Of a stretch of 64,000 bases of DNA, positions 16,587 through 62,900 are shown one piece after another. The notes beneath the pieces were generated by a model, which did not search any database, was not told the origin of the DNA, and saw only the letters and a list, made by a program, of their open reading frames with translations. The position numbers and the translations under genes are program-made. The stretch spans positions 1,183,955 to 1,247,954 of the forward strand of contig NW_003314275.1 in NCBI RefSeq assembly GCF_000143415.4, in the 5' to 3' direction. This DNA is from Selaginella moellendorffii. Lineage: Eukaryota; Plantae; Lycopodiophyta. The first letter of the stretch is position 1; every line of letters starts with the position of its first letter.

Positions 16587-17033
16587 TGTCTTCAAACTTG
16601 CGCTCCATGCATTCTACATACTGCTGCTGTTCCAGATCTATCCTGAAACCACAAATAAATTGGGAAGTCAGGAAATGCGAACCCATCAAAGATGAACCAC
16701 CCCACCCAACGCCAGCGCTCTGTAGGCTCAGAACCGCATTTGTCGTGTTTCAGATCACTTGACGCAAGGCAAGAAGTCCCTGTTGAATCAGAAAGACAGC
16801 GAAACAAAGCAACGAATATAACAATCTTGAAGCTTAGTCTAATTACCCCTTGCTAAGCTCAAATGGCTTTCTGTCAGTTCCGACAACAGTTTTCACCTGA
16901 CACTTGACAGCACAAAACAATCGAGGTTTGAGAATTAAGACTAAAAAACTGTCCACACTCACAGCTTTGCCGGAAATAAGCGGACTACAAACCTGGGAGT
17001 AACCATTGAAGCAATGCGTTCCAGTGATAAGAC

Positions 17034-36286: not shown

Positions 36287-39200
36287 TTAATGTAGCTGGA
36301 GGGACTGCGAGCCGAGAAGCATCTCTTCCAACTCTTTAAAGCCTCTGGACACGGGCTCAACCGCGGCCGGAGAGAGCGGGAGCCTCTTGACTTCCGTCAT
36401 GTACCTGTGGAGCCAAGAAAGAAGTAAGTTCGCGAGATCCTATCTAAAGCTTGATGAACGCAGCACCTGTTCACTGTGCTACACAGGCGGTCCCGGACGC
36501 CAGATGAATCGTCAGAGCCGGAGAAGCTGCCGCCAATGGATCCAATGCGCTGGGCCAGTACCACGATTGTCCACTCGCGCATCACGGCGAGCGCCGAGCG
36601 GAGGAGCCGCAGCCGCAGCGCTGTGCTTGGCAGCACCGAAGTACTAGTGAGAAGCTGGTCATAAGTTCGTTGTACTGGCTCTGGGGAGTCGTGACAGGCG
36701 GCCAGTAATGCTCGTGGGACGTCCTCGTCTCCAACGATTTCCAAGCTGGATGATACTCTCTCCTGGGAGGAAAGACCGTGACGCAAAACGATGAAGAAAG
36801 AGAGGAAGGAGGGATCTACCTCGGCTGCTCGCTCTAAATGGAGGCAGATAGAATCCAGTGGCATGCTACCGCCGTCGCCGGGATAGAGCTGGGGGCCAAC
36901 TCTCTTCACCACCGTGCAGGCCTCGGCTATGCCTTTAATCGTGATGGCTTGGTCTATCAACCTCGCCCACGTCTCGCGCATGACATTGTTCTCAGCGTCG
37001 CTCGTGTAGTGTGAGAAGTGGAGGATTTCCAAGCACACCTGCGAGAAGAAAGCGAAAGGTTTTTTTTTTTGCTCGTCAGAAAGGAGTAAAAGAAGATGTG
37101 AGAGTTGGAAGAAAAAAGAAATGGAAAGAAAGAAAGAACTCGCCTCCCAAAGCTTGAAAGGAACCGCGTAATTGTTGTAGAGCTGTGTGATGCTCTTAAG
37201 TTCGGCACCCAGCTCCAGCGCTTTCTCCCTGGCGGCACGGAGGAAGGCCTCGTCGTCCGCAAAGCCCTCCGGCGGGAACGCGTCTATCGCCATCTGAGAA
37301 GAAATGGCCTCGAGCTCGGCCTGTATCTTAAGCTGGAACCGCAACACCGCGAGCTTGCCTTCCAGGAGCTCCAGCAGGCCGCTCTCTCCGACCTCCGCGT
37401 TGGATCCCAGAGCTCCGTGGCGGATGCTTCTGGCTTGTACCACGGCATGGCTGAGGTACTCGTGCCTGGAGAAACAAAAAAACTCTCAGATAGTAAACAA
37501 CGAGCCTCGAAAGAAAATATTGCACGGTACCTGGCTTCCAGCGTGAGCTGCTCACCGCCTTCGCCACCCTTTCGCTCGCCGAGGCGCAAGAGAACGTAAG
37601 CCGCGAGCGCATGCTGTCTCTTGTGCACGTAATATCTCGAGAGGAGCTCCAGGTACTTGGCTTGGTGTGTAGTGATGGGCTTCATCAGATGGATCACGGA
37701 AGGTGGCGACGTTATTCCTCGGGGGCTCTTCGCAGGCTGGTAAAAGAGAAAACAAAACGTTGTTAGCATCAGAGGAAGAAAAGCTGCAAGCACAACTTAC
37801 CTTTGCAGTTTGGAAATCAACAGCGGCTTGTAGAAATGGAACCAGATCCGGTCCGGCTAGCTCGAGGAGCTCCTTCTCCAGCCCCAGCTCTATCATCGAC
37901 TCGTACAAGTACTTGTGAAAAGCCCGATCTGGTGAGCGTACGCCCAGCTGAACGATCTGTCTAACGTAGCGCATCCTTGCATTTGCATCCAGCGGGCCCA
38001 TCTTTGATGCGTTCCCGTTGAGTGCGGTTTGCGGCACCAGTGAACGAAGCGCATTTGTTATCACTTCGTAGCATTGCTGTCTGGATGCGAGCGCCATCTT
38101 TCGCCGGTTCTCGTCGATATGCGCATTAAAAGCATCCTCGTTAGGATCTAAAGCTTTAGCCTTCCGGAGGGGAAGCTCGACAACTGCCTCGTAAAATCTG
38201 CAACAAACTTCCAGCTTGTGAATCGACCAGCCTGACTGGAGACTGTTTGTTACCTTATCTCTTCAAAACGCGGGCATACGCTCAGCAAGTTTGCGGTTTC
38301 AGGAACCCTGGCCAGCAAGTCAAGTGCCTCTCTGGCCAAATGCTCACGGACTTCCACATCTCTAGCGTTTGCTGCCTTCTCCAAACACTGGACGGCTTGA
38401 TAGAACTTATCATCGGCCTCGTTGTAGTAGCTCGGGCATCCGTCGCGTAGCTTCGTACTTATGTCGTCAACCGTCCCTTTTCCCTCGGGAGATACATAGT
38501 ACTATACATTCAAAAAGAAAAACTGATGAAGGAACAACACTTAGAAACATAACGATCAAACGTACCTCCATAAGAGCACCAATAAGTCGCGTAGCTACGT
38601 ATTCCCCTTCCTGAGAACAGACAAGCTGATGAAATGAAAGCTGCGCGAGCTGACGGCGGACTTCGGATTCCAGACTTTGCACTAATCTCGTCAAGTGATG
38701 CTGAGATAAAAGCTGCAGTAGAAACAGCGCTTCCGCAGACCTCCGGAGCAACCTTCTGACGCATTCCATCCCTCGCACCTACAGAGATTGTACATATCAG
38801 CCGACGTTCAAACACTGCAAAATCGTGTCCAACCTCCATGGCAGTAAGCTCAGCAGGACTATAAGCAACGCGTTGTCTCTTGGCACCAGCTTGAAGTCCA
38901 CCTCCGGACCTCGCATAAGGCGTGTCGTATTGAAGCTTGTGTCCAGCTTCACTTCTGCTTATACCATTTCGATCTCCGTAGCCTGACAAATCGCCAATTC
39001 CCATGATCCGACCATAGTGACCGCGACGTTGGTTCCTTCGAGCTCTGAGAAACATTTCCAGGGATCTGATCTTGTCCTCCAACGTATTCATTGCGTCCGG
39101 AGATATCCGACAAGAGATTATTCCACCTGTGTCCGTCACCATGTCGTTTCCAGAGTCACCTTTGGCTATAAATACTGGTAGCTCCCACACGGACCAGAGA

Positions 39201-41506
39201 AGCCTCGAAGCACACAAACAGAGGCCTTCGTGTGCACCTGAGAAAACAGGCTCGGCTTCTTGCACCACCTGTCCCATATTAAATCCACCACCTGTATTAA
39301 CTGGTGTCGTCGTTGCAGCCCCTCCTTGCATTTGCGGTACTCCCACCAGCCTTGGATCTTCAAACGCCTCGGCAGCCTTCTCAACCACCGCTGTTGATAT
39401 CATCTTCTCATCATACGAAACAATGCGAGCCGCCAGCAGTAGACACATTGCCGCAGCTTCGCCAGCCCCAAAGCGCTGAAAGAACTCTTCCAGAATCGCT
39501 CTCGTGGTGTTCGATTCGAATAACCGCTGCAGCAAGTCCACTGGCCGGTTCATGACAATCTCCGTCAAGCCCCGCGTACTGGCGATCACTGCTCTCCGTC
39601 TAGGAAGAATATGTTGCGTCGCAAGATCTCCTAAAGCCCACAGCGCTCTTGCTCTACTTACTTCTCCCACAGCACCAGAGCCAAGGGCGCTGGAGTCCCA
39701 TACCAATGCTTCAGCAATCGCCGCCTGCTCCGGAGGTGGCAACATATCGACGATCGCATAAGTATGCTCGTCTGCTCCAAAAGTTGTCACAACTTCTCTC
39801 AAAGCACGCATGTTTCTTCCACTCGCACCCATCCCTCCATATGGCGAACTCGCACCAGGAATCAACGGAGAAGTGTAGTCTTTGCGCGCCACAAGCAACC
39901 GTGGAGAGGGTGACGAATCGGCCAGCAAGAAGTTTCCGCTTGAGTATTGAGCTTCTTGAACTTTCAGTCCGTCACCCTGTGGCCTGGTACCGATAAGAAC
40001 GTTGCCTAATGAAATTCCTCCACCAACACCAACCGAAGGACCTGGCCTTGCGGACACTATTCTGAGTAGCGAAGGACGATCCATCCCAATCGTTCCACCA
40101 GCAGCCTGGCTTCCGCCCATGGTCGGAGTTGTCGACAGGTATACTCTGCGTCCATCTGAAACTATAGCCACCAGATGCAGCCACTTGGATTCCATACTCG
40201 AGAGAGGAGCCAGAGAAACCACCGTTGCCTTTGGAGCCCGACTGGTGCCACGCGAACCTGTGCTACGTATGCTACCGTGACGACCGTCTCGCTGATCCCC
40301 AAAGTTTTTTTCTTCGCCTACTTTCTTCGGGGCAGCATCTCCGTTTCTGCCGAGATCAAAAGCTTGGACCTTGGACTCCTGTGTGCGTGCGTACATGATG
40401 TTTCTTTCATCGTCAACGGCAATTTCCAAAATCGAATCTGCCGCTCCAAACTTGAGGCCGTTCGGTATAATCCACCTGAAATAAATTACATGTAAGAAAA
40501 ACTTCAAAGAAAGTGATGAACATGTGTACCTTGAAAGCATACTGCCAAAGCCACCTGTATGGCAAATCTTACGGCAGCGACTCTGCCATCCTAGCCCTGT
40601 CGTGTAGAGCAGCTCGTAGATATGCCCATCACGGCCACCGAGAAAAATACGTCCCTTCTCCGTGGAACTTACACACGTCATGGTGACACCATCCGTCGGT
40701 ACCGTGTACTCTGGTAATGGTTGTAAGGAAAGCTCGGAAAAAGCATCACTGCCGTCGCTGCTAGCACCGCAGCAGACGCCTAGAAGCACAAGCTTGTATA
40801 GCGTCAAAAGCGGGAATTCAAAGAATCAGTCCAGGAAGAATAGTTGGAGTGACAAAATACCTCGACAGGAGTTGCAAGCACTAGAAGGTGCTGAATCGCT
40901 TCTACGAAAACTCCAGCCTTCGCTTTCGCTAAGCCAACAGCACAAATGGCCTGCTCTTCACCGCTATATTCGACACAAGTTCCATCCCTGCAAGAGAAAA
41001 AACTTTACCAGGAGTGCCAACGAACTAAGCGAGGATCTTACCATTTATCAAAGCGCCATATAAAGAGAGTCTCGTCGACAGTAGCCCAAGCTCGTCTTAT
41101 GGTGGGAAAAATCCCACAAAACGCCATCCCTTGGCCAACTCCAGCATTGTAGCACTCCATGACTTGAGGCGGCAGCTCCCTCTTCTTCGAGACATCGATA
41201 TATGGAGGCCACTACAAAATTCACAAAGACCCAACACCCTTTTAGCCTCCATCCGAGACGAAACAAGATCCAAAATCCCCCCCTAGCTACAAAATCGCTA
41301 CGCTAGAGCGAGCATTCTACCACTAGAGCTATAACACATACCTCCTTCTGTGGACTAGCATAGGGATGGCTCGAATAGCGCCCGGCATCAAGAGCGTCTA
41401 GAAGATCTCCCGACGCGTAGCATCGCAAATCGCGATTGATAGTGTCGCTGAGAAGCCTACCAGCCGCCGCAATGTCCTCCACGACCGCCTCGTCTTCCCA
41501 GCTCAT
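36287..41506 (-). CDS. NUP155: Nuclear pore complex protein Nup155, multi-exon
   Basis: MSWEDE..RYSSHPY, GRIFLGGRDGHIYEL, LATQHILPRRR, EAEPVFSGAHEGLCLC, SITQLYNNYAVPFKLWE, YMTEVKRL. Confidence 0.93.
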
Positions 41507-45063: not shown

Positions 45064-45218
45064 AGTTTTATGTTTAATTTCACGCTAACTCCATGGCGCT
45101 CTAGGGTTCTTACGTTTACACAGGAATGCTTCGCACAGGCTCTGGCTGCACAGACTAAAGGTAAGTGCTTTCTCAAAATTCGTTTTTGGTTATCTCTCAT
45201 GGTGGTTTTCAGGGACTC

Positions 45219-46649
45219 ATGGATTCCGACCAAGAAAACAGCTCTAGTGGCCCCTCGGGGAGCCTGTTGGAGAGCCTTGGAGCGGAGCTGGTGTCCATCC
45301 TTGCTCCAGTCTCGGCGTGCATGCTCTTTGTCGTCCTTCTGGTAAGAGCCCTCGTCGTTAACAGCAGCCAGCTCCAAGCTCCCGCCATAGCCCTCGTTAT
45401 CTATGCCGAGGACCCCTCCGACTCCACCTCCGAGAAGCTCGGAGGTGCTCTCCTCAACGCCCTCGTCTTTGTAGCATTCGTCACAGCCGCTACGTTTTTG
45501 CTTGTGGGTCTCTTCTATCTTCGCTGCACCAAGTGTCTCAGGCTCTATGTTTCCTTTTCGATCTTCAATGTCCTCGTCTACCTTGGTGCTGCTCTCGGTG
45601 TGCTCTTTGTCCAGACTTACTCCCTCCCGGTTGACGTGATCACCTTCTCGGTAGTGATCTTTAACTTTGGAGTGGTCGGGGTGCTTGTGGCGTTTCCTGT
45701 GATGCCTGTCCCGATCATCTTCACTCAGGGGTACTTGGTCCTCATTGGTATGCTCACCGCTTTCTGGTTTACCTTCCTTCCCGAGTGGACTACCTGGTTC
45801 CTTTTGGTGGCTATGGCGTTGTATGACATTGCTGCGGTCTTGCTGCCTGGTGGTCCTCTCAACATGCTTCTAGAGCTGGCCAGCAAGAGAGAAGAGGAGC
45901 TACCAGCGCTGGTATACGAGTCCCGCCCCGTGGTGCGTCCCGGCCAGCAAGGCTCCCAGTCAAGACGGTGGAGGAGACGAGTTGTGGTAGCAGCGTCTCC
46001 AAGTACCTCAGCCGAGACAGCTCCGTCGAGAACATCGCTCTTTGCAAGGATCTTCGGCTACAGGGTGGTCAGCCCGTATCAGACTGTTAGCATGGAAGCA
46101 CCTCAGCAAGCAGAGATTTTGCAAGCTCCAGAAGAAGAGGCAGTCGAAACAAGTCCTGGAGAGGCTGGGGATGGAGCTGGAGCTCCAGGGAACAGGGACA
46201 GGGATCCAGCGGAAGAAGCCATTCCTCTGATGAGCAGGCACGTAGATCACAGGATGGAAACACTCAGTGCTTTCATGGCAAACGAGGAGAGAGCCGCGGG
46301 GGCTATACACGACGAACTTCGCGAGCTTAACAACGATGGCAGTGAGGGTGGCGAGCTCGGAAGGATCGAGTCCGTGACAGAGGGTGGGATCAAGCTGGGA
46401 CTCGGCGACTTTATATTCTATAGCGTGCTGGTTGGACGAGCAGCGATGTTTGATCTCATGACCGTGTGGGCCTGCTACTTGGCCATCGTTGCAGGGCTTG
46501 GTGCCACTTTGGCGCTCCTCGCAGTGTGGAGGCGCGCTCTTCCGGCACTGCCTATATCCATCTCGCTGGGCGTCGTTTTTTATTTCCTCACGAGGCTTGT
46601 ATTGGAGCCATATGTTTTGCAGCTAGACACTCGCCTTGTGTTTTTTTAA
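45219..46649 (+). CDS. PSEN: Presenilin (gamma-secretase catalytic subunit), intronless CDS
   Basis: LPEWTTW, ALYD (Asp1), KLGLGDFIFY (Asp2), ALPALPIS. 5' UTR intron 45161-45212. Confidence 0.96.
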   Translation: MDSDQENSSSGPSGSLLESLGAELVSILAPVSACMLFVVLLVRALVVNSSQLQAPAIALVIYAEDPSDSTSEKLGGALLNALVFVAFVTAATFLLVGLFYLRCTKCLRLYVSFSIFNVLVYLGAALGVLFVQTYSLPVDVITFSVVIFNFGVVGVLVAFPVMPVPIIFTQGYLVLIGMLTAFWFTFLPEWTTWFLLVAMALYDIAAVLLPGGPLNMLLELASKREEELPALVYESRPVVRPGQQGSQSRRWRRRVVVAASPSTSAETAPSRTSLFARIFGYRVVSPYQTVSMEAPQQAEILQAPEEEAVETSPGEAGDGAGAPGNRDRDPAEEAIPLMSRHVDHRMETLSAFMANEERAAGAIHDELRELNNDGSEGGELGRIESVTEGGIKLGLGDFIFYSVLVGRAAMFDLMTVWACYLAIVAGLGATLALLAVWRRALPALPISISLGVVFYFLTRLVLEPYVLQLDTRLVFF

Positions 46650-46698
46650 CTTATTATTAATCCTATAAACTCACTGAAATAAAAAAAGGAATGTGAAA

Positions 46699-47739
46699 AT
46701 GTTTCCCCAAAATAACAGAAATCTAACTACTATAGTAATTAATTTATTGTTAACGTTTGCATTACTAATGGTTAAAGAGGCATTTAGTTTATCTCCTGCA
46801 GATTTATTTGTATACAAAACTTATGGGGACTTACACATGGCTAGAGAAACCTCCATGGCTGAGTTGTTAGTTTCCTTACGAAGAAATTTGTGGAATAGAT
46901 TTCCATATTCAATTGATGGAGCTTTTGGAACCACTCCAGTTGGTTCATCTCATGCATACCAAGTTTGGGTTAAAGATAGTGGTCCTTTCATAATAAAGTT
47001 TTGGGTTTTTGGCCCCATGAGTGACATGGGTTATGAATGTGGATATGATCCTAATAATCTACCTCTTATTTATAATTATATTATTTCAAGTACCATAGAA
47101 GGGTTCATATATATGACTTGGAAAGAAATAGTGACAAATGGTGCTTCTTATTTTTCTGGTGTGATTGATAATTTGGGAGTTCAGTTTTCACTACGGGATT
47201 ATGATGGCTATCATCACAGACCATATGGATTAACCCATCAGAATAAATCATCTAATACATTTGGCATAATTACTTTAGAAAATATACATGAGTATTTAAA
47301 AAATCAGACAGAGCTACAAGAGAAAACTTGTAATCCTTTCACAAGTATTCTCTCAAGTTCATACTATAGAGCACCAAATGAATACCTGGCTGAAGGAAAA
47401 CTTTTGCAGGCTCAAGATAAGCAAATTTTCTTTATTGTTTTGACAGATTGCAAACTTGTATTGGTTATGAATGGACATGTATACATTATTTATGATCCTA
47501 AATTAGGAGTTCATTATACCTTTTGTGAGCTTCATATGCAACAAGATGGAAATTTAGTTTTATATAGTTCTACAATGTACCCTTATTGGAGCACTGCTAC
47601 AAATTGTGAGCCAAGTAAAAGTTGTCAAGCTCCATCTTATTTAATTCTTCAAAATGATTGTAACTTAGTTTTATATAGACATGGTGATCCACCATTATCA
47701 ATATGGGATTCTAAGACAAATTGTAAATATTTCCAATAA
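46699..47739 (+). CDS. Secreted chimeric bulb-type lectin, AT-rich (copy B1)
   Basis: Hydrophobic leader, ~180-aa unknown domain, MQQDGNLVLY and LQNDCNLVLY motifs. Intronless. Confidence 0.85.
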   Translation: MFPQNNRNLTTIVINLLLTFALLMVKEAFSLSPADLFVYKTYGDLHMARETSMAELLVSLRRNLWNRFPYSIDGAFGTTPVGSSHAYQVWVKDSGPFIIKFWVFGPMSDMGYECGYDPNNLPLIYNYIISSTIEGFIYMTWKEIVTNGASYFSGVIDNLGVQFSLRDYDGYHHRPYGLTHQNKSSNTFGIITLENIHEYLKNQTELQEKTCNPFTSILSSSYYRAPNEYLAEGKLLQAQDKQIFFIVLTDCKLVLVMNGHVYIIYDPKLGVHYTFCELHMQQDGNLVLYSSTMYPYWSTATNCEPSKSCQAPSYLILQNDCNLVLYRHGDPPLSIWDSKTNCKYFQ

Positions 47740-47834
47740 GAAATTTTTATATTCATTAATTATTATTATTTATTTTATTAAATGGTTGATATATTAAACA
47801 AGTAATATGTATTAAATGGTAAAATAAATTCTGG

Positions 47835-48445
47835 TTGATCTATGGATTAGATGCCTTCTGGTTTACTTTCTTATCCCATTTGATAACAAGGGAAGCTCTC
47901 ACCACTAGTATACAAGTTATAGTGGGTTCCCAATCAAGTGTGGTAGTAACATCTCCAAGTACCTTAGCCAAGGGAACTCTGTCAAGAAGCTCACTTTTTG
48001 CAAGGTCAAGGTGTAAACCCAACACAAACTCTCAGTATGGAACCTCCTTGGCAAGCAGAGGCAGTGATATCACCAGAGACAAGTTCCAGAAGAGACTGGG
48101 AATGGAGGTGGAGCTTCAGGGATCAGGGACAGAACTCAAGAGGAAGAATTGCTCTCTCCTTGTTGCCTGCTCAATAGGCACTATACACAATGAACTGCAC
48201 GAGCTTAACAATAATGGCAGCAAGGGTGGCAAGCTTGGGAAGACAACATGTAACTTTATATTCTATAGATGGTTGGATGAGTAGCAATGTTTGATCTCAT
48301 GATTGTGTGGGTCTGTTACTTGGTCATTGTTGCTGGGCCTAGTGCCACTTGGTGCTCCTTGCAGTGTGGAGTGGTGTTGTGTATTATTTCCTCACAAGGC
48401 TTGTTTTGGTGCCATTTTCTTACAGCTAGACACTTGTCTCATGTT
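47835..48445 (+). pseudogene. Decayed presenilin 3' fragment co-duplicated with lectin B2
   Basis: ttctggtttac, tctccaagtacct, cgagcttaacaa.atggcag, actttatattctatag, gatctcatga and agctagacact are collinear with 45760-46640, with deletions and frameshifts. Confidence 0.85.
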
Positions 48446-48516
48446 TGTATTTAATTTTTAATTTTAATTTATCTTATTATACTCATCTATATAACCGGGC
48501 AAAATATCAAAAATAT

Positions 48517-49557
48517 ATGAAAATGTTTCATTTGATATTCCAAGATTTAATAATTGAGTTGTTATTGCTAATCTTTGGAATACTAATAGTTAAAGAGGCA
48601 CTTAGTTTATCTCCTGCAGATTTACTTGTATACAAAAATTATGGGGACTTACACATGGCTAGAGAGACCTCCATGGCTGAGTTGCTAGTCTCCTTACGAA
48701 GAAATTTGTGGAATAGATTTCCATATTCAATCGATGGAGCTTTGGAAACCACTCCAGTTGGTTCATCTCATGCATACCAAATTTGGGTTAAAGATAGTGG
48801 TCCTTTCATAGTAAAGTTTTGGGTATTTGGCCCCATGAGTGACATGGGTTATGAATGTGGATATGATCCTAATAATCTACCTCTTATTTATAATTATATT
48901 ATTTCAAGTACCATAGAAGGGTTCATATACATGACTTGGAAAGAAATAGTGACAAATGGTGCTTCTTATTTTTCTGGTGTGATTGATAATTTGGGAGTTC
49001 AGTTTTCACTACGGGATTATGATGGCTATCGTCACAGACCATATGGATTAACCCATCAGAATAAATCATCTAACACATTTGGCATAATTACTTTAGAAAA
49101 TATACATGAGTATTTAAAAAATCAGACAGAGCTACAAGAGAAAACTTGTAATCCTTTCACAAGTATTCTCTCAAGTTCATACTATAGAGCACCAAATGAA
49201 TACCTGGCTGAAGGAAAATTTTTGCAGGCTCAAGATAAGCATATTTTCTTTATTGTTTTGACAGATTGCAAACTTGTATTGGTTATGAATGGACATGTAT
49301 ACATTATTTATGATCCTAAATTAGGAGTTTATTATACTTTTTGTGAGCTTCATATGCAACAAGATGGAAATTTAGTTTTATATAGTTCTACAATGTACCC
49401 TTATTGGAGCACTGCTACAAATTGTGAGCCAAGTAAAAGTTGTCAAGCTCCATCTTATTTAATTCTTCAAAATGATTGTAACTTAGTTTTATATAGACAT
49501 GGTGATCCACCATTATCAACATGGGATTCTAAGACAAATTGTAAATATTTTGAGTAG
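48517..49557 (+). CDS. Secreted chimeric bulb-type lectin (copy B2)
   Basis: Mature region nearly identical to B1; diverged signal peptide. Confidence 0.85.
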   Translation: MKMFHLIFQDLIIELLLLIFGILIVKEALSLSPADLLVYKNYGDLHMARETSMAELLVSLRRNLWNRFPYSIDGALETTPVGSSHAYQIWVKDSGPFIVKFWVFGPMSDMGYECGYDPNNLPLIYNYIISSTIEGFIYMTWKEIVTNGASYFSGVIDNLGVQFSLRDYDGYRHRPYGLTHQNKSSNTFGIITLENIHEYLKNQTELQEKTCNPFTSILSSSYYRAPNEYLAEGKFLQAQDKHIFFIVLTDCKLVLVMNGHVYIIYDPKLGVYYTFCELHMQQDGNLVLYSSTMYPYWSTATNCEPSKSCQAPSYLILQNDCNLVLYRHGDPPLSTWDSKTNCKYFE

Positions 49558-51110: not shown

Positions 51111-54100
51111 GTTTATAATTTAATATATGGAGTCTTTTGTTTATCTTATAAAGTGTTTTATCTTATATTCTCTAAGTTTTTAGCATATTTCCTTCTTTTT
51201 ATTTTTCCTATTTTTACTTTGACAATTGTTGAAAATTCCTACTCTAATGTTTCTTTATCCACTTTTTTTTCTTTTCACAATATTTTTTCCTCAACTTTTC
51301 TCAATTTCTCCTCTTTATCATAATGCTTTAAATGTTTTTTTGAAAGAGGGGGTAGAGGGGATAAATGGGAGATCAACCCCAATTATAGAGTTAGGATTAA
51401 AAGATATGATAGTTGAGTGAGGATAAACAATATAAATTGTGAAGTAAAGATGAGTATAGCAAATCTGAATGATTGATATAGTGAGGTTAAATGAATTCAA
51501 TAGTGAAGTGAGGTAGAACATTAATAAAAAAGTGAAAACAAACACAATAAGTCCAAACAAAACTAATATTTTAGAACTTTTTTTCCTTTGAGGAGGGGAT
51601 AAAAAAGATATGAAGGATGAATAGAATGAATTTGATCTCCCATATGTAGTGTTGGATGAGGATGAAGGCTATAAATTTGAGTTAATATATATTTTAAAGG
51701 TTGACCAAAGGGAAGATGCAGAAGTATTATTTGTTGATAGTCATGAGTCTAAGTTAATGGTAGTTTCAGAGGATGGCTTGTAGATGGACTTAGAGATAGG
51801 ATGTATCATTTATTGCAATGATGTTTAATGAATTGTAGTGGCTTTCGAAGTTTCTTATTTTAGTTCAAAGTTAGAGCTTCAAGGTTGGTTCAAACATTTT
51901 GTAATTACACATAGAGTCATAACAAGTTTAATGAGATTCTATAATCACATAATATTTATGTCATGGCTTTGGGTCTTGTTTTTGTCATAGTTGTCAACAA
52001 CTACATTAGTGGTTAAAGTGGGAGTTACAAGTTCTTGTAGCAGTTTATATTTGCTCAGCAAAAGCTCTATATATCCCACTTGACTTATTATCACCATCTT
52101 TTTATCTTCATAACTAATAAAAGAATGACATTTTATAGTCCTTCATAATATGGATAAAATATAAATACTCAAGTATGAATAGAATAGTTTGAAGGCCTCT
52201 TATATATTTATTATCAAAATATAAAATTACTTCTTCTAATTTCAACTAAACTATCACATAATATGGTTTCTACTTACTATCCGTACTATATATTTAGAAT
52301 TTGCCATAAACCCCCCCTTCCCGCCCCACCCCCCCCCCAATGGGACTAATACATGAGGTATGATAGTGAGGGTGTTTGGTAGACACAATAAACTATTACA
52401 TAATGATATTGAGGGATTAATGCTCAATATGCAAAGGTTTTTTTCAAAACAATGCAAGATAGGAGAAAAGAGAATTGAAAGCTAGGTTGAGTAAATGTAT
52501 AGAAATTCCTATTTTATGTTTATCTAGCTAAACCTTTAAATAAGAGAAATTGATAAAGGGAACCAATAGTACCGCCCTCTTGTAATCGTGGCAGTAAGGA
52601 AAGAAAATCTAAAAGAATTTGCCGACATATAACTTTCAAAACCCATAGACACATTTGCATCACTCTCCCCCCCTTAGAGAAGATTGATGTCTTTGTTAAT
52701 GCATACTTTAATCTAGATAACTGCTAAGGAAATAACTCTAAAAAAAATTTACAATGTTTATACTTTATAAGAAATGTATAAACTTAAATGAGTTAGGGGG
52801 CAACCTCTTTTTCTAACACAAATATGCTACCACTCAAACACCTTCCAATTGTCACTGACAAAGAAATAATTAATAGAGTCAGTCAACCCTACTACATTAG
52901 GTATCCCAACTTATAAAAGATGATATGCCCTTGCTTGCAAGTGATATAGAAAGAGAAGGTAAAGGCCTTAAACAAACTTATTACTAAGATTTAGATAGAT
53001 TATCTTGAGTTTGGGCCAGTATAGGGATATTAGCTTTAGCACTTTGTGTGCATAGTGAAATTTTTAGTTATGGGATATCTATTATCAACTAATCATATCA
53101 TCCACATTTCTTTTGATATTCGTTATTCCATTAAAAGGGATGTAACCATATCAACAACTCTAATTGCCTATTTATAAGTAATAGATGAACAATATCAAGG
53201 TCATAAACAAAGATATTTTAGAGATTAAATTATTAGTAAATAAATATTATATTATGACACAAAAGTATTCCAAGTAAATTGTCATATAATAAACCAAAAC
53301 TAGAGGATAGGAACCACCAAGACCACAAAAGTTTAAAGGCATAAAAGCCAATAAAATTTAATAGCTAATGTATCATCAAGAAAACTCAATGATAAAATTT
53401 AACTTTTAAATATTATAAATAGTATGCCAAATAGCTTACAAAAGATATCTTAAAGAACTCAAAGTATTATTGACTAACAAGCAAAATAATCATAAATATA
53501 TCACCTAAAAGAAATAACATCCAAATCCATCAAAATTAACCTTTAATAATAATCAACAAAATGAATACTACAAGACCAACAAATATTCTGTTATGTGAAT
53601 TATCTTATTAGTAAGTCTTAATAGATCCCGGTCAACAATACAAAGGAACTAGAGTTGTTTAAATAAGTGTTAGCAATATTCTACCGATATCTTAAATCTA
53701 AGAGATCAATTTAGAGCAAATCATAAAGAATATATAGTAATGCATAAAAGCTCTATTTCGTTAAAGTGGGATTTATTCAGTAAAATGGGACTAGGTATAA
53801 ATTTTCAAGTATTTGAAAATGACGTGAAATTATATGTTTTTTGTCCAGGGGCTAAACATATCTGGGGCATGGTGACTAGCACGGTGACTTTGTGTCCAGG
53901 CTGAGTCCATCTGGTTGTATAATAAATCTCATTGTCAAGGTGAACAAGCCGAATCTGAAGCTAAAGAAGAGCGATGGCATGCACGCACACATTATTTGTT
54001 TGTTCATTGAGCGTGTGGTGAGCTTTCCAAGATGAACGTCATTCCTATTAGCCAGACATATAACTTAATGGTGAGAACATTTAGATATTATTCAATGTTA

Positions 54101-54407
54101 TCTTTTTCTAACGAATCTAATTGTGAAGGTGTAGCAAGAGGCATTGCTAGTCTGGAGAAGTCATTTAACTCATTTGACCCTTAGTGTATTTTCATGAAAC
54201 TAAATAACATTCATATTATTAAGGAATTTCTCTAGTACCTTTTTTTTACGACATAGAGGCTTGCATTTCTTTCAAAGGTGATTTAGTAAAAGGCCTGAGG
54301 GCACATGCCATTCTATTTCTCAGACCGGTATTAAGATATACTAGTGCAAAGGGAAAAAGGTATTTGGTGATCAAGTAAATGGCATGAGGGCACATGCCAT
54401 TATAAGC

Positions 54408-54665
54408 CTAAGCGCTAGTGGACACCTCCTTTTTGGTACTCTCAGCGGTACTATCATCCTTCTCCGGGTCAGTTGTTTTGCTTTGGATTGTTGTCTCTGA
54501 CGTTACTGGGGCGTTCTCGATAGTTGTTAATGTTGCCATTTGTTCAGAAAAATGATCACTTGGAGTATAGTACGGGGAGTTTGGAAGACTTATATATTCT
54601 ACATCTTCACCTATCTCCTTCTCCGTCTCCTTTTCTGCCTCACTTACAGATTTTGTGCTTGCCAT
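54408..54665 (-). CDS. Small acidic Ser/Thr-rich ORF inside the transposon (85 aa, function unknown)
   Basis: MASTKSVSEAEKETEKEIGEDVEYISLPNSPYYTPS..; locally higher GC than its AT-rich flanks. Confidence 0.3.
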   Translation of the reverse strand: MASTKSVSEAEKETEKEIGEDVEYISLPNSPYYTPSDHFSEQMATLTTIENAPVTSETTIQSKTTDPEKDDSTAESTKKEVSTSA

Positions 54666-55378
54666 GAGAATGCTCTTCACCCTAAAATATGGAGTTTGTT
54701 GTGTTATAAAAGGAAACCAACACACACGCTACAAGGGAATGATGGTACATAAAGCACGTAAGCCCACAATATGGGTTTATGTGCCATTAATATGGGCCAC
54801 ACGCCATATTATTAGATTTATGCACGTGTGATTGGTAAATGCATATGTCACATCATCTTTGTTTTAACTCACACACTATATCAGGCCTAATGAACCATAT
54901 CACATGTGCGCACATGCTATATATATAGAGAAGTATTATGCAAGGATAGAAAAATTCAATGCATGATTGTGGAGAGCAATGGCATGAAGCCACATGCTAA
55001 ATAACATTTTAGAGAAAGAATTAAAATAAAAACATGCAAACAGTACTGAGTGGACCAAGACTTAGAAGTGCACAATTGAATGAGGTATTTCTAATAAATA
55101 TTTCACTCACCTCATATAGGAATGGCTACCACTCTCAAATGGCGTATCGCTTCATGCCATCACCTCGCAATTTGTTATAACAATCCGATGAATTCATATT
55201 CGGCTTGTTCACCTTGAACTTTAAGTAAGATTTGCTAGAACAACTAAGAATTTATACTTGTTATTTGTATCATCTCACCTAGGAATGGCGTAAGGCCACA
55301 TGCCATCACGCCTCCTCTGATTCAGATTCGGATTGTTCACCTTGAAATAAAATACATTAGAAACTTAGTAAAGGAATA

Positions 55379-58202
55379 TTAATGAATCTCACCTTGAACC
55401 CGGGTTATGAATGCTCTTGCTACATCTCTTGCATGGTCTGGCAAGGTGATGGTGGCACTCTGCTTCCGCATCCAACCATGCACAACATTATCCATCGATA
55501 TGCTCATGCTGGGATCCCTTAGATTCAGCACCCATCTCTTTTCTAGGCAATCCTTCGTATATTTGGAACTTGGCTTGAACCACTCCACAGTTACATTGAA
55601 GGAGTTAGTTTCCGCGTCCTCCTCTGCATCAGTGATGCAGCACCCCACCCATATCATTTGTTTTTTATTACTGGGTCTGACAAGCACGACCATTCCTTTG
55701 CAGACCTGTACTGGATTGAATGCTGAATCCGGCTTCTTGTTCCTCGGCCCACAATAGTGATCCTCAACATTGTTATCTGTCACTGCATTTCCAGAGGACA
55801 TTGTTCCGCTACTATCTGGTGCTCTGGGTTCTGGCCAAAAGGACTCTTCCAATTCTTCATATACAACCGGCCCATTCTGGATAGCAGATATAATCTTCTC
55901 CCAGTATTCGAGCAAAGGCTTGCACCTCTGAAAATAGGATTCTCCACCAAACACCAACCCCCTCTTCCAGAAGGCAATATGTTGTCTAATCCCGGCCACT
56001 ATACTTTCCTGGTCTTTGAGTCCATCCGGGTGCATCGGCCGTGGGGAACCCTAAGGAATCATAGGTTCCCCAGTTATGGGATCTCTCTTGAAGAGTTCAA
56101 TGCCGTCCACTGGCAACCACACTGTGTCCCATTCTCTCATCTTGTACCTCATCACTGGAGCACCGTCATGCATGTTGAAATGAAACTGAAGAGGCTTGGA
56201 GTGGCCAATCAGCGTTTCGGATCCGTCCCTGATGTAGCCTCTTACAAACCTTAAAGTCTGGAACCTCTGTCACAAGTGCAGCTTCAACAGTGCCTTTGAT
56301 GCAATTTTGGAATTCATCGTAGAGTTGTGGGAGGGTGAGGACATTGGATCGCCGGAGGGACTCTGCCAGGTGACTGAACATGGCATCGATGTCTTCATGA
56401 GTGTGCCCAACCATGAGAAAGCCAAGTGTAACCGTTTCAAATATGCCTTTGGCAACAAGCATTGCCAAGTACGCGAAGACGTACATGTTTTTGTTCTCAC
56501 TGCCAGCATTGTCTGTTTGGAGTAGAAGATGGGGTGGAAGGCCACATCGGCCGCAAGAACTTCCTTGAGATTCTGCTTTGTTTGGATGAGGCTGTGCATT
56601 CACCGGGCGACCAGCCTCGTCGGAATGGCATGAGGCCTCACGTGATAACCCTACAATCTGACGGCCAACATATTCACTAGGATGGCATGGGGCCCCATGC
56701 GATACTGCAAGCCTTTGCTCCTCCTCCAGCTGAACCCTGTATGGGGTTCGATCAACAAGGGCCTTATGCAAGGGTTGGCCGTTCAGCTCAGTCTGCACAC
56801 TTTGCAGAGACCTTAAGTGTTTTGCTAGGGACGCAATCATCATGTTTGCACCCCCGCCACCCCATAGAGGTACAAAGAAGTTCCCATAGTTCTGGGCACC
56901 ATGCCCATGAGCGATTATGCCAAACAGAGACACAGGCAGCTGCATGGATGAAGAGATTGCCTTGGGGGCAGGATTGAGTCGAGGTAAGCACGTCTTTTTT
57001 TGGTCCATTTTGTCATGGATGATGCAGAGGTAAGAGTCAGGTCTCCCCATGGAGAGAATCCTGTTATGATAATATGCAGTCCTGCAGCTTCTCTGCTCGA
57101 TGTTGTGGTTGAGCCGCCTTCTAACCAATGTCTCTCGCTCTTGAGCAATGCAAGAATTCTTCAACAAAGCCATTTTGATAGCAGTGCACTCGTCACACTT
57201 TGAAAAGCTGGAGTACTTTCCTATACTCACATCCCTGAACCTATTGCTCCACAATCTACTAAATCTAGATTGGCTCAGCTTCCTGTAGCCATTACTCTGG
57301 AGTTCCCGATTCACATCTTCCAATATGGCCCCCTTGGTATACATGGAAGGGAGAACTCGTTGGGTGTCTCGAGTTCCATCTTCCAAGAGGTGGGTTTTAT
57401 GTGGTTGCTGCTCGCTACATGTCTCGACAAACCTCTTGAAGATTGCCTCTCCATATACAACATGACCCCTGGTTTTGTGAGTACTGTCGTTCCCATGGAC
57501 TGCCTGTTGAACCCTTTGTTCCTCGAACTCAGTTTTGATTCTGTAGAATGTGGTTCGAGGGACTCCATAAATGATTCTCCATGCCTTCATGCAGACCAAA
57601 CCCCTCTGGAAGACCATGCCCCCCACCTGATGTTCTGAAGCATCAACAGATGACCGTAATGCCACATACACAAAATTGCGAGCTGCCTTCCAGGACAATG
57701 TCTTGTATCTTGCTCTCTCCTCTTCAATAGCATCCCAATCAGCATGTTGACAGCACCTCCTCTTGCAACAAGCAACTGTCGAGACCATTCGAACCTCCAT
57801 TGCCATTTTCTTCCTTTTCGGTTCGTTACTCAGATCCCTTTGGCTGCACTTTAGGAAGGTGTACTTTCTTTTCCCATGAAGAGATGTTCTGTCATCAGTT
57901 GTAGTGGTGTTTGATTGTGAATCCTTCACATTCTTAAACACTAAGTGCCTCAATTTCCACCGCACAATGCTTCCAATAGTCAGACTGTTTTCTTCTGTGT
58001 CAACAACCTCTAAAATTGCGACTCCAATATCATCCCAGCCCAATTCTTGATTAGCAACCGCATCTCTTGGATCGACAACTATGGCTAAGCCCTCAGCTAC
58101 CACCTCCCCCTCGGGGTTGTTTAGAAACACCTTTGCTTGAATCCATGTAGCATGGTTCTTAAGATCCACGGAGGGAACATGCGTCGCACTTGCGGAGGCC
58201 AT
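55379..58202 (-). pseudogene. Sola-like DDD transposase (~940 aa reconstructed) with one frameshift and one nonsense codon
   Basis: CCKRRCC, VCMKAWRIIYGV, FSKCDEC, IIHDKMDQ, LQTDNAGSENKN, FLMVGHTHEDIDAMFS. Frameshift at about 56248 resumes FVRGY..IGHSKPLQFHF..PVMRYK. TAG at 56051-56053 is in frame with ORF 55379-56035. Confidence 0.85.
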
Positions 58203-58414
58203 TCTAAAAGTGCAGAAAAGAAGTTAAGACCATACAAAAAATGATTGGAGAATGGCCTAAATCATAATATACCAAACAACCTCAATAGCATGAGGCCACA
58301 TGCCATTATTCAAACATGCTATTGACACCCATGTGAAATTTCGCATTCACAAAATTGGCATGAGCCCTCATGCCATTAGTGGTACCACTAATGGCATGAG
58401 GCCTCACGCTATCT

Positions 58415-59970
58415 TTGGCCCCTGCTAGCCTGTTGCTATATTCCTTTTGCCTTGCTGCAACTGTATATATTTTTGTGTGCGTGACTAGTCACCCATACGT
58501 GCATATGTGTGTGCTCATGCCATTCATTGCAGATCAAGGGCTGAGTGAAAGCAGCCAGTCACCACCTCCTAACTCAGATTCCTATGGCGGACTCCCCTTC
58601 CCCAATCTCAATGGAGAAGTACAATGGATGAGGGATGCTTTTCAAGTCAGGGCCACGTTTTTCTCATCTCGTCGTCTTCGAAGGGTGCAAGAACGTGCAG
58701 AAACCATGTTAAGACAGTCGGGTGAGGATACGATCCTAGGTCACACACTAAAACAGGCTATGGATGTCTTGTATTTTGAGATGGAGACTCGGCCAGATGA
58801 TTTTCCCAAGATGGTCCTGGAAGAACAAGCCATCCAGCCTGAGCAGCCTATGGAAGAAATGCAGGAGGGGGATGAGGAGTCAGAGAAAGATAATGAGCAG
58901 GAAGAGCAGAAGGACGAAGAGGAGGACAAAGAAGAGGAGGATGAAAAAGAGGAGAGTATTGACCCCACATTGCAGAGGAGAGTATTTCCGCCCTTCACGT
59001 TTCCTCGACCAAAACCCTCTCAACGACCATCGGGAGCACCATTCGCTAATATTGTAGATGGTAAAATTGACTTGTACCATTTTTTATGCTGACGCATTTC
59101 ATTTCAGAGTCACGGCGAAGGTACTATATCATTTTTGATCTGAACGGTGTCCTTTTCTCCCATGAGCGTGGCTCGTCCTCGAATGTCACTGCACCCTCCA
59201 AAGCCTGCGGTCGCAAGTTGGTCAAAAGAGACAGATTCACATTAATCACACGGGAGAAACTGCGGGATCTAATAATGACCATGCGACACTTAAAACAGAG
59301 GGCCGGGTTCAATTTGCAATTGGGAGTTTGGACATCCATGATGCGCCACAATGCATTAACGTTGCTACAGATGATGCACGATCAGACGCGAGTAATATTA
59401 CCATTTGACTTTCTCCTAACGCAGGAGGATTGCTTGACTATGGTCTATGTGAGGGGTAGCAAGCCCATTTTCGTCAAGCCAGAGGTTGTAGTGATGAACC
59501 GGACTGCTAGGTCAAGTGAAATCCTCATCATCGATGACTCGCCGATTAAAACTGTAGTGAACACGCACACATATGCAGTGCACCCCATCTCCTACAGTAT
59601 GGAAACTAGGGAGAAGAAACCGTATGTTCTGGGGGACCTTGCAAAACGGCTTGGAGCGATGGTGATAGAGAACTAGCCAGTCCAGGAGGTGGCTGCAGAA
59701 ATCAACCAAATGGCAGATGGAATGGTATATCAAAAGCCATTTGATCGGACAGACACCAGTCATCATTTATGGCATGTATATTGTCTAGCCAAGCACTATC
59801 CGCATCTCCATAATCTGCTCAACCGGATGGGTTCTTCGACCACTGAACATGAGTGTGGACGTATTAGAGAAGAGATGGCATTACTATTGGGTTTAAATCC
59901 TGATAGTGTGGAGAGTGATGAAATTCCAAGATTATTGTATAGGCGTTGGAGGCAAAAAATAACAGTCTGA
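58415..59970 (+). pseudogene. Transposon cargo gene: acidic N-terminal region + HAD-superfamily FCP1/SCP (NIF)-like phosphatase domain + C-terminal extension; one premature TAG
   Basis: YIIFDLNGVL (motif I), GVWTS (II), LTQEDC..KPIFVK (III), LIIDDSPIK (IV). Intron 59061-59107 joins the frames. TAG at 59674-59676 is in frame with 59689-59970. True start uncertain. Confidence 0.75.
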
Positions 59971-62900
59971 GATGGCATGTATTTATTTAAAAATGTAACT
60001 TATTATGGCATGGGGTTCCATGCCATTGTATTAATATTAAAAGACAATTCTTTGAGAGGATTTGCATTATACTAGAAGTGTTACAGCATGTTATTGGAAG
60101 TCTACAAAGTTGTTTTATTAATAAGGGGAAAGTAAAGATTGAATGGGGACTTGGGCTCCACCTAGACTCGGAGCAACTGAGCCAATATTAAAAGGATGGA
60201 AAGAAATTGGACGACGATGACAAGGAGAAGAGAGAGGTGAAGCAGTGGCAGAGGGAGGAGAAGTGATTGAGTAGACATTTCCTTGTTTAAAATAAAATGG
60301 CATGTGCCTCAATGCAGTTGAATTTTGTTATATTTATATACTATATAAAGGTTTGGAAACCTTATTTTACAAGTGGGATAATGACAATTCCCACTTTAAC
60401 GAAATAGAGCTTATAAAGCTAAAATAAAAATTAATCATTATAAAAGATTATCAATCATCCCATTGATAAAGATACACAAATACTATTGAAAAACAATTCA
60501 CCATCCCAAAGAATGCAAACCATCCATAACCAATAAAATCAAGCAAAACCCTAAAAAGAATAATTAAGTATCCCAAATAATGATCATAATGATCGCTAAA
60601 TGTAAACATTAATTGAAAACACGTCTAGCCAACAGCTTTGAACATAACCGAAGAGGCTTTATACACGATCAACACTCAGCTAAAATTAAAGTGAAAACTA
60701 TGAAATAGACTCATATAGGTACACAACTTCCTAATAGATAAAGATAAACTTGTGTTCACACTGCCTTTAGTCAAATTTAAGAAAAATTTATGAGAGAGCA
60801 TCATAATAATTACTTGAACTAATAGATTAATCTCTATAGTTTTAATTGCACTCATAACTATGTCTAGGAAAGATCCACTAGTGCAATGCTAAATAGCTCT
60901 TACGGTAATATGGTAATAACTCATGATAACTAATGATAGACTAACATTAATTTTACCAACTCAAAATGTACCTTAAGTTGCTAATATGCCTCATTCACAA
61001 GCCCAAGTGTAAACTTGAGCAAATGATATATCTTACATCCATCTTATAAGCCCAAGTGAAATATACAATATAGTATAAAAAGGTAACTAAAATTCATACC
61101 CAAAAAATGCATACAAAGCCAAAAACTCGAGTTCCACTCTATTGTCCTTAGCCCACATGTCCAAAGGTTTAGGTTTCACTTCATGGTTATAAATTACTAT
61201 ATGGTAAAGGGTGAAAACTATGTGCATTACATTTAGTATCAAAGGATAATAAGATTGGGTGACTAATCTTGTTGCATACACCAAGATAAAAATGATGATC
61301 CAAGTGGGTATATATTTGGTTGCAAAGGGCCTTGGGCCACTAAACAAAGGAACAAGTCAAACTTTCGAGCTTACAGCTAAGGAGCAAGGGAATCAAAGCA
61401 TAGAACAACTTTTAAGTATATAGCACAAAGAGTGAAGAGACAAGAGCATGGAGCAATATTGGAACAATTCTAAAGCATTTAGCATCCCACTGCCAAGACT
61501 AGCAAGAAAAATGAAGCCAAATGAAGACAAATAAAGTCTAGCACTATTTCAGTATACTAATGGCCTAATGCAAGCATATGGGTACTCCACTAACTTACAT
61601 AATATAGAGTTTAAGATTAAACCCAAGCTAAATGTAGAATAAGAATAGATATGCAAGCAGGGAGCTAGATTATACCTCAAGTTGATTAGTCATACTCAAC
61701 TTACCCACTATTTCTACTATACATTTAGAACCCTTCAATAATGATATAGAAAATCAAGTAACAAAAAAAAAACACTTCATCACTCAATACAATGATGAAG
61801 AGGTAAATATTTTATCTTGTATAACTTCCCAAACAAAGCAAAAGAAGGAAGCTTAAGTGAAATGAAATTATACTTAAACTTAGGCATCCAAAAGAAGAAA
61901 GACCCGATCTAGGCAATGCTTGTCATAAACAAGTGAGAAGCAATTAAGAACAATTATAAAATCATGTAGTATATAAGTAGCACTTAGACGTGCTGAAAAG
62001 TAACCCTCACTCACTGTTGTATATATTTGCATTAAATTAACTACCTATGACTGTTTATGTAAAGTAGAGTTAAGAGAGTGACATATGCTTATACTTACTT
62101 ATGCCTTTGGGGTTTGAGGTTGAGTTTTATTCGTTTCTATTCTATTCTCCTTTTTTTCTTCTTCTTCTTCTACATTCTTGTCACTGTTTGTTTGTCATAT
62201 TTTACAAATAGGGGCAAGAACACAAGTATAAGTAGAAAAAGCTTTATTCATTTTTGGCGATCACAGTGGGATAAACCATCACTCTTTGGTTTGAAAAACA
62301 ACCGGGAGAAAATTATTTGTGAATTTTAAATATGCTCAGCACTAAGAATCACAAGTAGATTTCTTCAGTGATTGCAAAGGTCTTTAACCCAGAAAACACT
62401 GAACAAAGGAGCTCTTTATGCTATTATAGTGATTTAATACCTAAACAAAGCAAGAAAGATACTTCTTCAACCATCATACAACCCATAGAGCTTGGGATGA
62501 GTTTGAAATTGGAATTCAACATACATTACCAAGAAACTCAAGTTTAAATTGTGTTACTAGCAATTTCTTGAGAAAAATCCAAAAGAAGAAGGAATGGAAT
62601 TTGTTTCATATGGAAAACATAGTCAACTACTCTAGAATTCTTTCCTTCTGAGCAAGTTCTCACTTGGGTTTTTGGAGGCTACATTCAGCATTGTCTCATA
62701 ATTTTTCTAGGTATACACAAGTAGAAAAATTAGTCAATTATAACTCTTATTTTCGACTCTAGCTTAAAGAGAGCTAAAGTTAGTCTTAGTGAAGAATAAA
62801 TTGGGGAATTATTCACCCAAATCTTATGAGGCTTTGATACAAGTAGAATTATAATTAAAATATTGTACTGTCTCAAAGCTTTGATCTAAGATCCTTTAGA

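Follow-up and report, generated by a model that had tools for sequence, protein, structure and literature searches.

We analysed a 64,000-nucleotide stretch of the genome of the lycophyte Selaginella moellendorffii (NCBI RefSeq assembly GCF_000143415.4, contig NW_003314275.1, positions 1,183,955 to 1,247,954 of the forward strand), referred to below as the window and numbered from its first letter. The window contains a 6,665-bp DNA transposon in which a minus-strand transposase gene and a plus-strand gene for a protein resembling NIF/SCP phosphatases of the HAD fold lie head to head between terminal inverted repeats (TIRs). We consider it probable, at roughly 0.8, that this element inserted recently and has since become defective, and that it belongs to a multi-copy land-plant family of Sola1 (DUF7869, DDD-type) cut-and-paste transposons which carries a NIF/SCP-like accessory gene. 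The features of the element, including its target-site duplication (TSD), are as follows.

53748-60412: whole element, 6,665 bp, with a minus-strand transposase and a plus-strand gene between the TIRs
53744-53747, unstranded: left TSD, ATAA, the same 4 bases being found outside both ends
53748-53771, plus strand: left TIR, 24 bp, a perfect match to the right TIR
53935-55346: left non-coding arm, with inverted and direct repeats and 7 palindrome sites
53974, 54290, 54379, 54899, 54979, 55139 and 55285: the 7 left-arm palindromes, spanning 53974-55306
55379-58202, minus strand: Sola1-type (DUF7869) transposase gene, about 940 codons when read conceptually, in two frames owing to a 2-bp deletion
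55382-55717, minus strand: C-terminal beta-barrel of the transposase, predicted with moderate support from structure matches to have a chromo-barrel/Tudor/PWWP/BAH-like fold
56051-56053, minus strand: premature TAG in the second transposase frame, CAG in other copies
56249-56250, minus strand: frameshift site, GG in the window copy and GGGG in other copies (DFK-G-FVRGY)
56682-56703, unstranded: palindrome inside the transposase frame, with a weaker one at 56625
58203-58504: intergenic region of about 300 bp separating the divergent start codons and containing palindromes at 58285, 58355 and 58391
58505-59970, plus strand: accessory gene, head to head with the transposase gene
58505-59060, plus strand: exon 1, starting with ATG at 58505 and encoding a short helical part and an acidic tract; no domain found
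59061-59107, plus strand: putative 47-nt GT..AG intron, joining two frames in phase (G|AG = Glu)
59108-59970, plus strand: exon 2, encoding the NIF/FCP1/SCP-type HAD domain and a helical tail, with motif I (DLNGV) at 59137-59151
59674-59676, plus strand: premature TAG in the accessory gene, TGG in most other copies
60005-60026: perfect palindrome in the right arm, past the end of the accessory gene; a weaker site is at 60297
60389-60412, minus strand: right TIR, 24 bp, a perfect match to the left TIR
60413-60416, unstranded: right TSD, ATAA, equal to the left flank

Ends of the element and its palindrome array

The 24-mer AAGCTCTATTTCGTTAAAGTGGGA occurs at the two TIR positions, on opposite strands and with 0 mismatches (24/24 bp). 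No further site was found in the 64-kb window at up to 3 mismatches, and shuffles gave 0. The ATAA pair measures 4 bp, a complete pair having been seen for one copy. Both ends were recovered in other DNA. A 3.6-kb Logan contig from another run (L001), reached through a 96%-identical protein (P0001), matched the window from 58397 to 56313 at 97.4% identity and then jumped to 53880-53748 (98.5%), with unrelated DNA starting exactly past base 53748; it therefore represents a further copy, inserted elsewhere and internally deleted. At the opposite end, a contig of run X1 joined base 60412 to foreign letters, which independently supports the right terminus. Since L001 stops at 53748 and the X1 contig breaks at 60412, both termini are independently confirmed. 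The initial annotation, made from the sequence alone, had described a transposon with intact ends, perfect 24-bp TIRs and a 4-bp TSD, and in these respects it was borne out; the ends are intact, but both genes of the window copy are inactivated. Neither a second copy nor a paralogous empty site was found within the 64-kb window.

The same annotation credited the element with a cis-motif array of its own, and this was confirmed by counting sites. The palindrome consensus is the perfect 22-mer ATGGCATGAGGCCTCATGCCAT. A search for ATGGCATG-N6-CATGCCAT at up to 2 mismatches returned 9 sites, all inside the element, with 0 expected by chance. At up to 4 mismatches there were 14 sites inside the element versus 1 weak site in the other 57 kb, and 18 of the 20 exact half-sites lay inside. 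The left arm also contains a 25-47-nt inverted repeat (53935-53981 versus 55193-55217 and 55299-55346, 83-96% complementary), whose arms are separated by 1.2-1.3 kb; one of the arms is present twice, 128 bp apart, and most left-arm palindromes are enclosed by the repeat.

The transposase and its assignment to Sola1

The 678-codon open reading frame (ORF) at 56166-58202 on the minus strand matched only DUF7869 in Pfam (E = 6.7e-38). Eight related database proteins were available, comprising seven DUF7869 homologues (28-45% identity, 705-1144 aa) and P0001 from the L001 copy. The seven homologues aligned from 58208 to about 56250 in one frame and, with no gap between, switched to a second frame that they follow from 56248 to about 55415. 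Because they continue gaplessly across both frames, the frame change is a frameshift and not an intron. At this place the window reads GAC TTT AAG G TTT GTA, while five X1 contigs hold two extra C on the plus strand, and P0047, a UniParc protein 93% identical to the window transposase, reads DFKGFVRGY; an intron as the cause was ruled out on the same evidence. As judged from these sequences, the window copy has lost two G from the G run at 56249/50. At base 56053, G was present on the plus strand in 34/34 X1 contigs and in a contig of a second sample, X20, giving CAG on the coding strand.

In a ten-sequence alignment, the window transposase retained all invariant positions, which comprise IIHDKMDQKK (D397, D400), QTDNAGSENKN (D564, N565, K571, N572), GHTHEDID (599-606, including D604 and D606) and an FxxCxxC..H motif. 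The acidic residues D397/D400, D564 and D604/D606 form three conserved blocks of this alignment and are candidate catalytic residues. The C-terminal barrel is common to all homologues, and its predicted model (predicted local distance difference test, pLDDT, 68) matched MRG15 (Z 7.9), MRG701 (Z 7.6) and the BAH domain of AIPP3 (Z 6.3); it is only a lead for possible chromatin-guided targeting. P0047 has 83 extra N-terminal residues that include a second small barrel module, for which the match to TNP1/En/Spm (PF03017) was weak (E = 0.0035, below the cut-off), giving only a hint that N-terminal barrels of the transposase may bind DNA. In the protein Atlas, the transposase was grouped with DUF7869 clusters of animals, and 11% of the members of one cluster also carry DDE_Tnp_ISAZ013.

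The Sola definition as summarised in PMC10741241, citing Bao et al. 2009, combines a DDD transposase with 4-bp TSDs, lengths that are mostly 2-9 kb and TIRs 11-1124 bp long; the 4-bp TSD, 6.7-kb length and 24-bp TIRs of the window element are all within these reported limits. For the curated Sola1-1_Ec32 transposase of Ectocarpus, the best BLASTP match is the Repbase entry Sola1-1_PPa of the moss Physcomitrella (PMC12477816, Supplement 2). When aligned by eye, the catalytic block of the window protein, LLLQTDNAGSENKNMYVFAYLAMLVAKGIFETVTLGFLMVGHTHEDIDAMFS, was identical to that of Sola1-1_Ec32, VTVQVDNTVAENKNNYLMGILAAMVGRGIMRTVTLCFMMVGHTHIQIDQIFS, at 28/52 positions without gaps. The block runs from QTDNAGSENKN to MVGHTHEDIDAMFS in the window and from QVDNTVAENKN to MVGHTHIQIDQIFS in Sola1-1_Ec32, and the YCMMDGANQ, FMLCKICTLLK and CCRLNC segments of the latter correspond to LCIIHDKMDQ, FSKCDECTAIK and CCKRRCC in the window. 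The initial identification of a Sola-type transposase is upheld by the match of the DN..ENKN and GHTH..ID blocks to the curated Sola-1 transposase and by DUF7869, and the element very probably belongs to Sola1. No mention of DUF7869 was found in the literature searched.

That the element represents some other superfamily with short TSDs (piggyBac/Kolobok of the TTAA type, Academ, Ginger or PIF/Harbinger) is highly improbable and already largely refuted. AT-rich flanks do weaken the 4-bp match, which would arise by chance with a frequency of about 0.7% at the local composition (our own estimate), and the complete TSD pair comes from one copy only. Set against this, the transposase matches nothing but DUF7869 in Pfam and aligns to the curated Sola-1 over the catalytic block, and shifting the boundaries to obtain 2-, 3- or 8-bp duplications leaves unequal flanks.

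The accessory gene, other copies and the decay of the window copy

A spliced plus-strand gene had been proposed, and a gene in head-to-head arrangement with the transposase is indeed present. Its 47-nt intron is read from the reading frames only; the sole contig across this place (run X20) retains the 47 nt, and an ATG at 59086 provides an alternative start. At the premature stop, base 59675 is G (TGG) in most X1 contigs and base 59674 is C in some. The frame resumes past the TAG to 59970, and the alignment to relatives crosses the stop.

The domain ORF matched Pfam NIF (PF03031) at 25.0 bits (cut-off 21.8; E = 1.7e-5), and all of the nearest relatives scanned (10/10) were NIF proteins. An exhaustive HMMER search of 1.84 billion representatives returned only 28 relatives, the best of them 31% identical (E = 1.7e-7), and there is therefore no close host paralogue. 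A weak protein-homologue match to the NIF ORF on a compact eukaryotic contig (L007) was set aside as an ordinary host gene. In an alignment of the window protein with eleven relatives, every invariant column was retained in the window (N12, R48, W74, Q105, K118, K123, D142, D143 and K147). The protein had been credited with all four HAD motifs. Motif II (S76), motif III (K118/K123) and motif IV (D142-D143) are conserved, but motif I is DLNGV and not DxDx(T/V), with Asn in place of the second Asp. FDLNGVL is found in nearly all relatives and the Asn is invariant in all 12 aligned sequences; it is therefore a mark of the subfamily, and decay of the window copy was ruled out as its origin.

An AlphaFold2 model built on the relatives' alignment (pLDDT 82) gives the accessory protein an SCP-like HAD fold. 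The top 25 Foldseek matches in the PDB were to human Scp1/2/3, CTDNEP1, UBLCP1 and Fcp1, with Tim50 also matched; human Scp1 was matched with E = 4.6e-8 and a template modelling (TM) score of 0.59, and giant-virus Ctd-like phosphatases in a viral library matched slightly better (TM 0.62-0.66). By language-model features and fold, the NIF domain (59110-59673, plus strand) comes closest, among named relatives, to Ctd-like/FCP1-homology proteins of Nucleocytoviricota, with baculovirus 38K also in the lists, and in the protein Atlas the accessory protein lies nearest to giant-virus NIF clusters. In this model-based comparison, the 14-20% identity to the structural matches speaks to fold, not to origin. 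In Scp1, the second Asp acts as the general acid/base, without which the enzyme is slower; a D98A mutant structure is among the fold matches. By analogy, the accessory protein may be a slow phosphatase or a binder of phospho-proteins. Exon 1 and the helical tail had no match in Pfam or the protein Atlas. NIF was the only domain recognised in the element's second gene by Pfam, and no methyltransferase or oxygenase domain fused to it was seen.

To place this gene in the family, we used contigs of run X1 (apparently labelled as DNA), 21,893 of which matched 54450-60449 with an identity of at least 95%. The summed contig depth is not a copy number, and only its evenness was used. It was nearly flat, at 635-765k over the transposase, 513-830k over the accessory gene and 636-724k over the non-coding arms, and was as high over 58250-58950 as elsewhere; X20 contigs also cover the accessory gene, with 3-8 differences each. 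Since its summed depth is about that of the rest of the element, a one-off capture can be dismissed and the accessory gene counts as a family component, which agrees with its original description as part of the element.

The other copies vary in structure. X1 contains nine internal joints at which 99 to 4,292 bases are skipped, some with filler letters, and together with L001 these show that internally deleted derivatives, typical of cut-and-paste families, exist. Some X1 and X20 contigs match the element at 95% identity or more to the left of 58194/58195 and to the right of 58957/58958 but differ from it between these two points, indicating that subfamilies differing in the central region exist; one loose end there encodes ..LQKKADVGDS, the end of the 83-residue N-terminal extension of P0047. 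In one X1 contig, the right terminus at 60412 is followed by 11 other letters and then by sequence like that from 59508 onward, as if one copy had inserted into another copy's accessory gene.

Three inactivating changes, the 2-bp deletion at 56249/50 and the stop codons at 56051-53 and 59674-76, are private to the window copy, the other copies reading through. Across 54450-60449, 40 differences from the contigs are listed, and in 34 of them the window carries T or A against C or G in the majority. All 34 of these transitions lie at CG (17) or CHG (17) of the majority form and 0 at CHH, as would be predicted for a plant transposon that is methylated in these two contexts and decays by 5-methylcytosine deamination; transitions of this kind also account for two of the three inactivating changes. 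About 47 differences were found in 6 kb (0.8%), and this low divergence and the perfect TIRs suggest a young insertion.

Interpretation, known systems and genomic surroundings

The family unit would consist of a TIR, the transposase gene on the minus strand, a divergent control region of about 300 bp with three palindromes, the NIF/SCP-like gene on the plus strand and the second TIR. The transposase would cut at the TIRs and make a 4-bp staggered cut at the target. Following insertion, the window copy would have been methylated and would then have decayed by 5-methylcytosine deamination, and its later mobility would require transposase supplied in trans. The palindromes may be assembly sites for element-encoded proteins, here perhaps the one or more N-terminal barrel modules of the transposase, and the accessory protein would serve the element. 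Our preferred guess, tentative and held at rather less than even odds, is that it acts on a phospho-protein (a chromatin protein, the transposase or the C-terminal domain (CTD) of RNA polymerase II), either by binding it or by dephosphorylating it slowly, and thereby promotes expression or transposition. A more specific proposal, which we regard as unlikely, is that a lycophyte Sola1 lineage keeps the DxN-type NIF protein under selection as a dedicated factor. The transposase or, in long elements, a fused ParB-like module would bring this factor to the 22-bp palindromes, where it would bind or dephosphorylate the RNA polymerase II CTD or a phospho-protein (of chromatin or the transposase itself) and would drive expression of the element or evade silencing.

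Several observations weigh against a Sola1 family with a working NIF/SCP-like partner. The two-gene layout of other copies is read from contig depth and comes from the sequence of this one genome. No NIF gene was found by tblastn near distant transposase relatives (L002, L003 and L008), whose contigs are too short to hold a neighbour; the contigs of the nearest NIF relatives (L004-L006) are likewise too short to display theirs. No DNA-binding domain linking the accessory protein to the palindromes was detected in the element, and the DxN motif, lacking the general acid Asp, may make for an inefficient phosphatase. The alignment to Sola1-1_Ec32 and its identity count were made by eye from the text of the supplement and not by a program. 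RNA-sequencing runs X25 and X26, which bear the same species label, gave 0 reads on the element, which amounts to no test of expression. X20 contigs, possibly from RNA (the kind is guessed), cover only the coding parts of both genes, retain the intron and share breakpoints with DNA contigs; owing to the retained intron and the common breakpoints, no expression is claimed from them.

Gene capture by DNA transposons is common, and the NIF-like gene could be a passenger, a host gene captured once by an ancestor of the family and without a role in its life cycle (Pack-type cargo). Among non-transposase proteins of active plant TIR elements, 335 Pfam domains occur only once (PMC12973397), no expression was seen here, the Asn at D+2 may mean weak catalysis, and relatives of the transposase elsewhere occur without a NIF neighbour. 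We nevertheless judge a passenger improbable: the gene has the same X1 depth as the rest of the element and no close host paralogue, the retention of every invariant subfamily position suggests long constraint inside the element lineage, and a compact divergent control region and palindromes are common to the accessory gene and the transposase. It is also possible, though we are inclined to doubt it, that the 6.7-kb element is a shortened derivative of a longer Sola1 form with a ParB-like/methyltransferase-like/phosphatase fusion, in which case the NIF-only gene would be a remnant and the palindromes would be read by a ParB module in trans. The divergent central sequence of X1 and X20 contigs (between 58194 and 58958) and the N-terminal extension of P0047, whose end matches one of the loose ends there, favour such a history, as does the lack of a ParB or methyltransferase domain in the element by Pfam (exon 1, tail and other ORFs; remote homology not excluded). 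On the other side, distant transposase homologues begin near the start of the window protein and have one N-terminal module, so that the window type need not be truncated, and the undiminished X1 depth over 58250-58950 indicates that the short form is common at this identity level. A shortened derivative is compatible with our main explanation, a defective Sola1 copy with a NIF/SCP-like accessory gene.

Accessory genes of DNA transposons are, to our knowledge, rare. The view of Sola elements as transposase-only, on which the initial annotation relied, is outdated, since a 21.5-kb Sola1 element of Ectocarpus published in 2025 carries on the opposite strand a gene combining a ParB-like protein with a DNA methyltransferase (PMC12477816), and the authors suggested that such accessory proteins form a class whose members bind the element encoding them and modify it. 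The window element resembles it in the 4-bp TSD ending in A, the TIRs, the DN..ENKN and MVGHTH..ID blocks and the second gene on the opposite strand. It differs in size (6.7 kb with 24-bp TIRs versus 21.5 kb with 282-bp TIRs), in its partner, a NIF/SCP-like HAD-fold protein without a ParB or methyltransferase domain, and in its palindrome array, which is not mentioned for the Ectocarpus element (PMC12477816). In red-algal (Bostrychia) Plavaka elements, ParB-like accessory proteins are encoded beside inverted-repeat arrays (bioRxiv 10.1101/2025.02.11.637652). These elements of the EnSpm/CACTA lineage likewise conserve accessory genes (PAG1-3) with the transposase, and their inverted-repeat arrays are proposed to be binding sites for element proteins; by contrast, they have a transposase of another superfamily, encode ParB-like proteins with a 2-oxoglutarate (2OG) oxygenase and a methylase with SET but no phosphatase-like protein, and hold their repeats in tandem beside PAG3, whereas those of the window element are dispersed. 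MuDR (MURA and MURB) and VANDAL (VANC) also pair a transposase with a dedicated accessory protein from the same element, but belong to the Mutator superfamily and have unrelated accessory proteins; for the MURB/VANC type, roles in integration or anti-silencing have been proposed (PMC12973397). With FCP1/SCP proteins such as human Scp1, the accessory protein shares the fold, the nucleophile Asp, the motif II Ser, the motif III Lys and the motif IV DD, and it differs in the Asn for the second Asp, in an identity of 15-20% to solved structures and in being encoded by a transposon.

Given the Ectocarpus Sola1 and Plavaka papers, a transposase combined with an opposite-strand accessory gene and private repeats is a known design, and the initial claim of an undescribed composite element is to be narrowed: the two-gene Sola1 design had already been published, but no paper describing a NIF/SCP-like partner of Sola1 was found in the literature searched, and the part undescribed there is the kind of partner, NIF/SCP-like and without a ParB or methyltransferase domain. 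The accessory genes studied so far (MURB, VANC and the algal ParB fusions) point to control of the element's own integration or to escape from silencing. If a Sola1 family keeps a partner with a phosphatase fold, this would be a new kind of accessory factor, possibly acting on the transcription machinery, and would extend to land plants the two-gene Sola1 design recently described in algae; were the accessory protein indeed maintained by selection, it would represent a new functional class of transposon accessory protein. As a dead copy, the window element is of value as a family member and not as an active element, and it illustrates clearly how decay in a silenced transposon can be restricted to CG/CHG sites.

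The element lies in an AT-rich stretch (GC content 0.30-0.33) adjoining gene-rich DNA. The following host genes were recognised in the window; those with PRT_C and with the malectin-like receptor-kinase ectodomain mark the DNA as that of a plant.

15195-16595, minus strand: malectin-like receptor-kinase ectodomain
27528-31058, plus strand: 1176-aa ORF with four C2 domains and PRT_C (plant MCTP-type)
36397-40807, minus strand: Nup133-like exons
45165-46649, plus strand: presenilin ORF, apparently intronless (E = 4.7e-115)

In addition, tandem ORF pairs are present at 134-2879 and 46693-49557 (342/343 aa and 348/370 aa), with a sub-threshold B_lectin match near each C-terminus; they accordingly look like a locally duplicated gene family.

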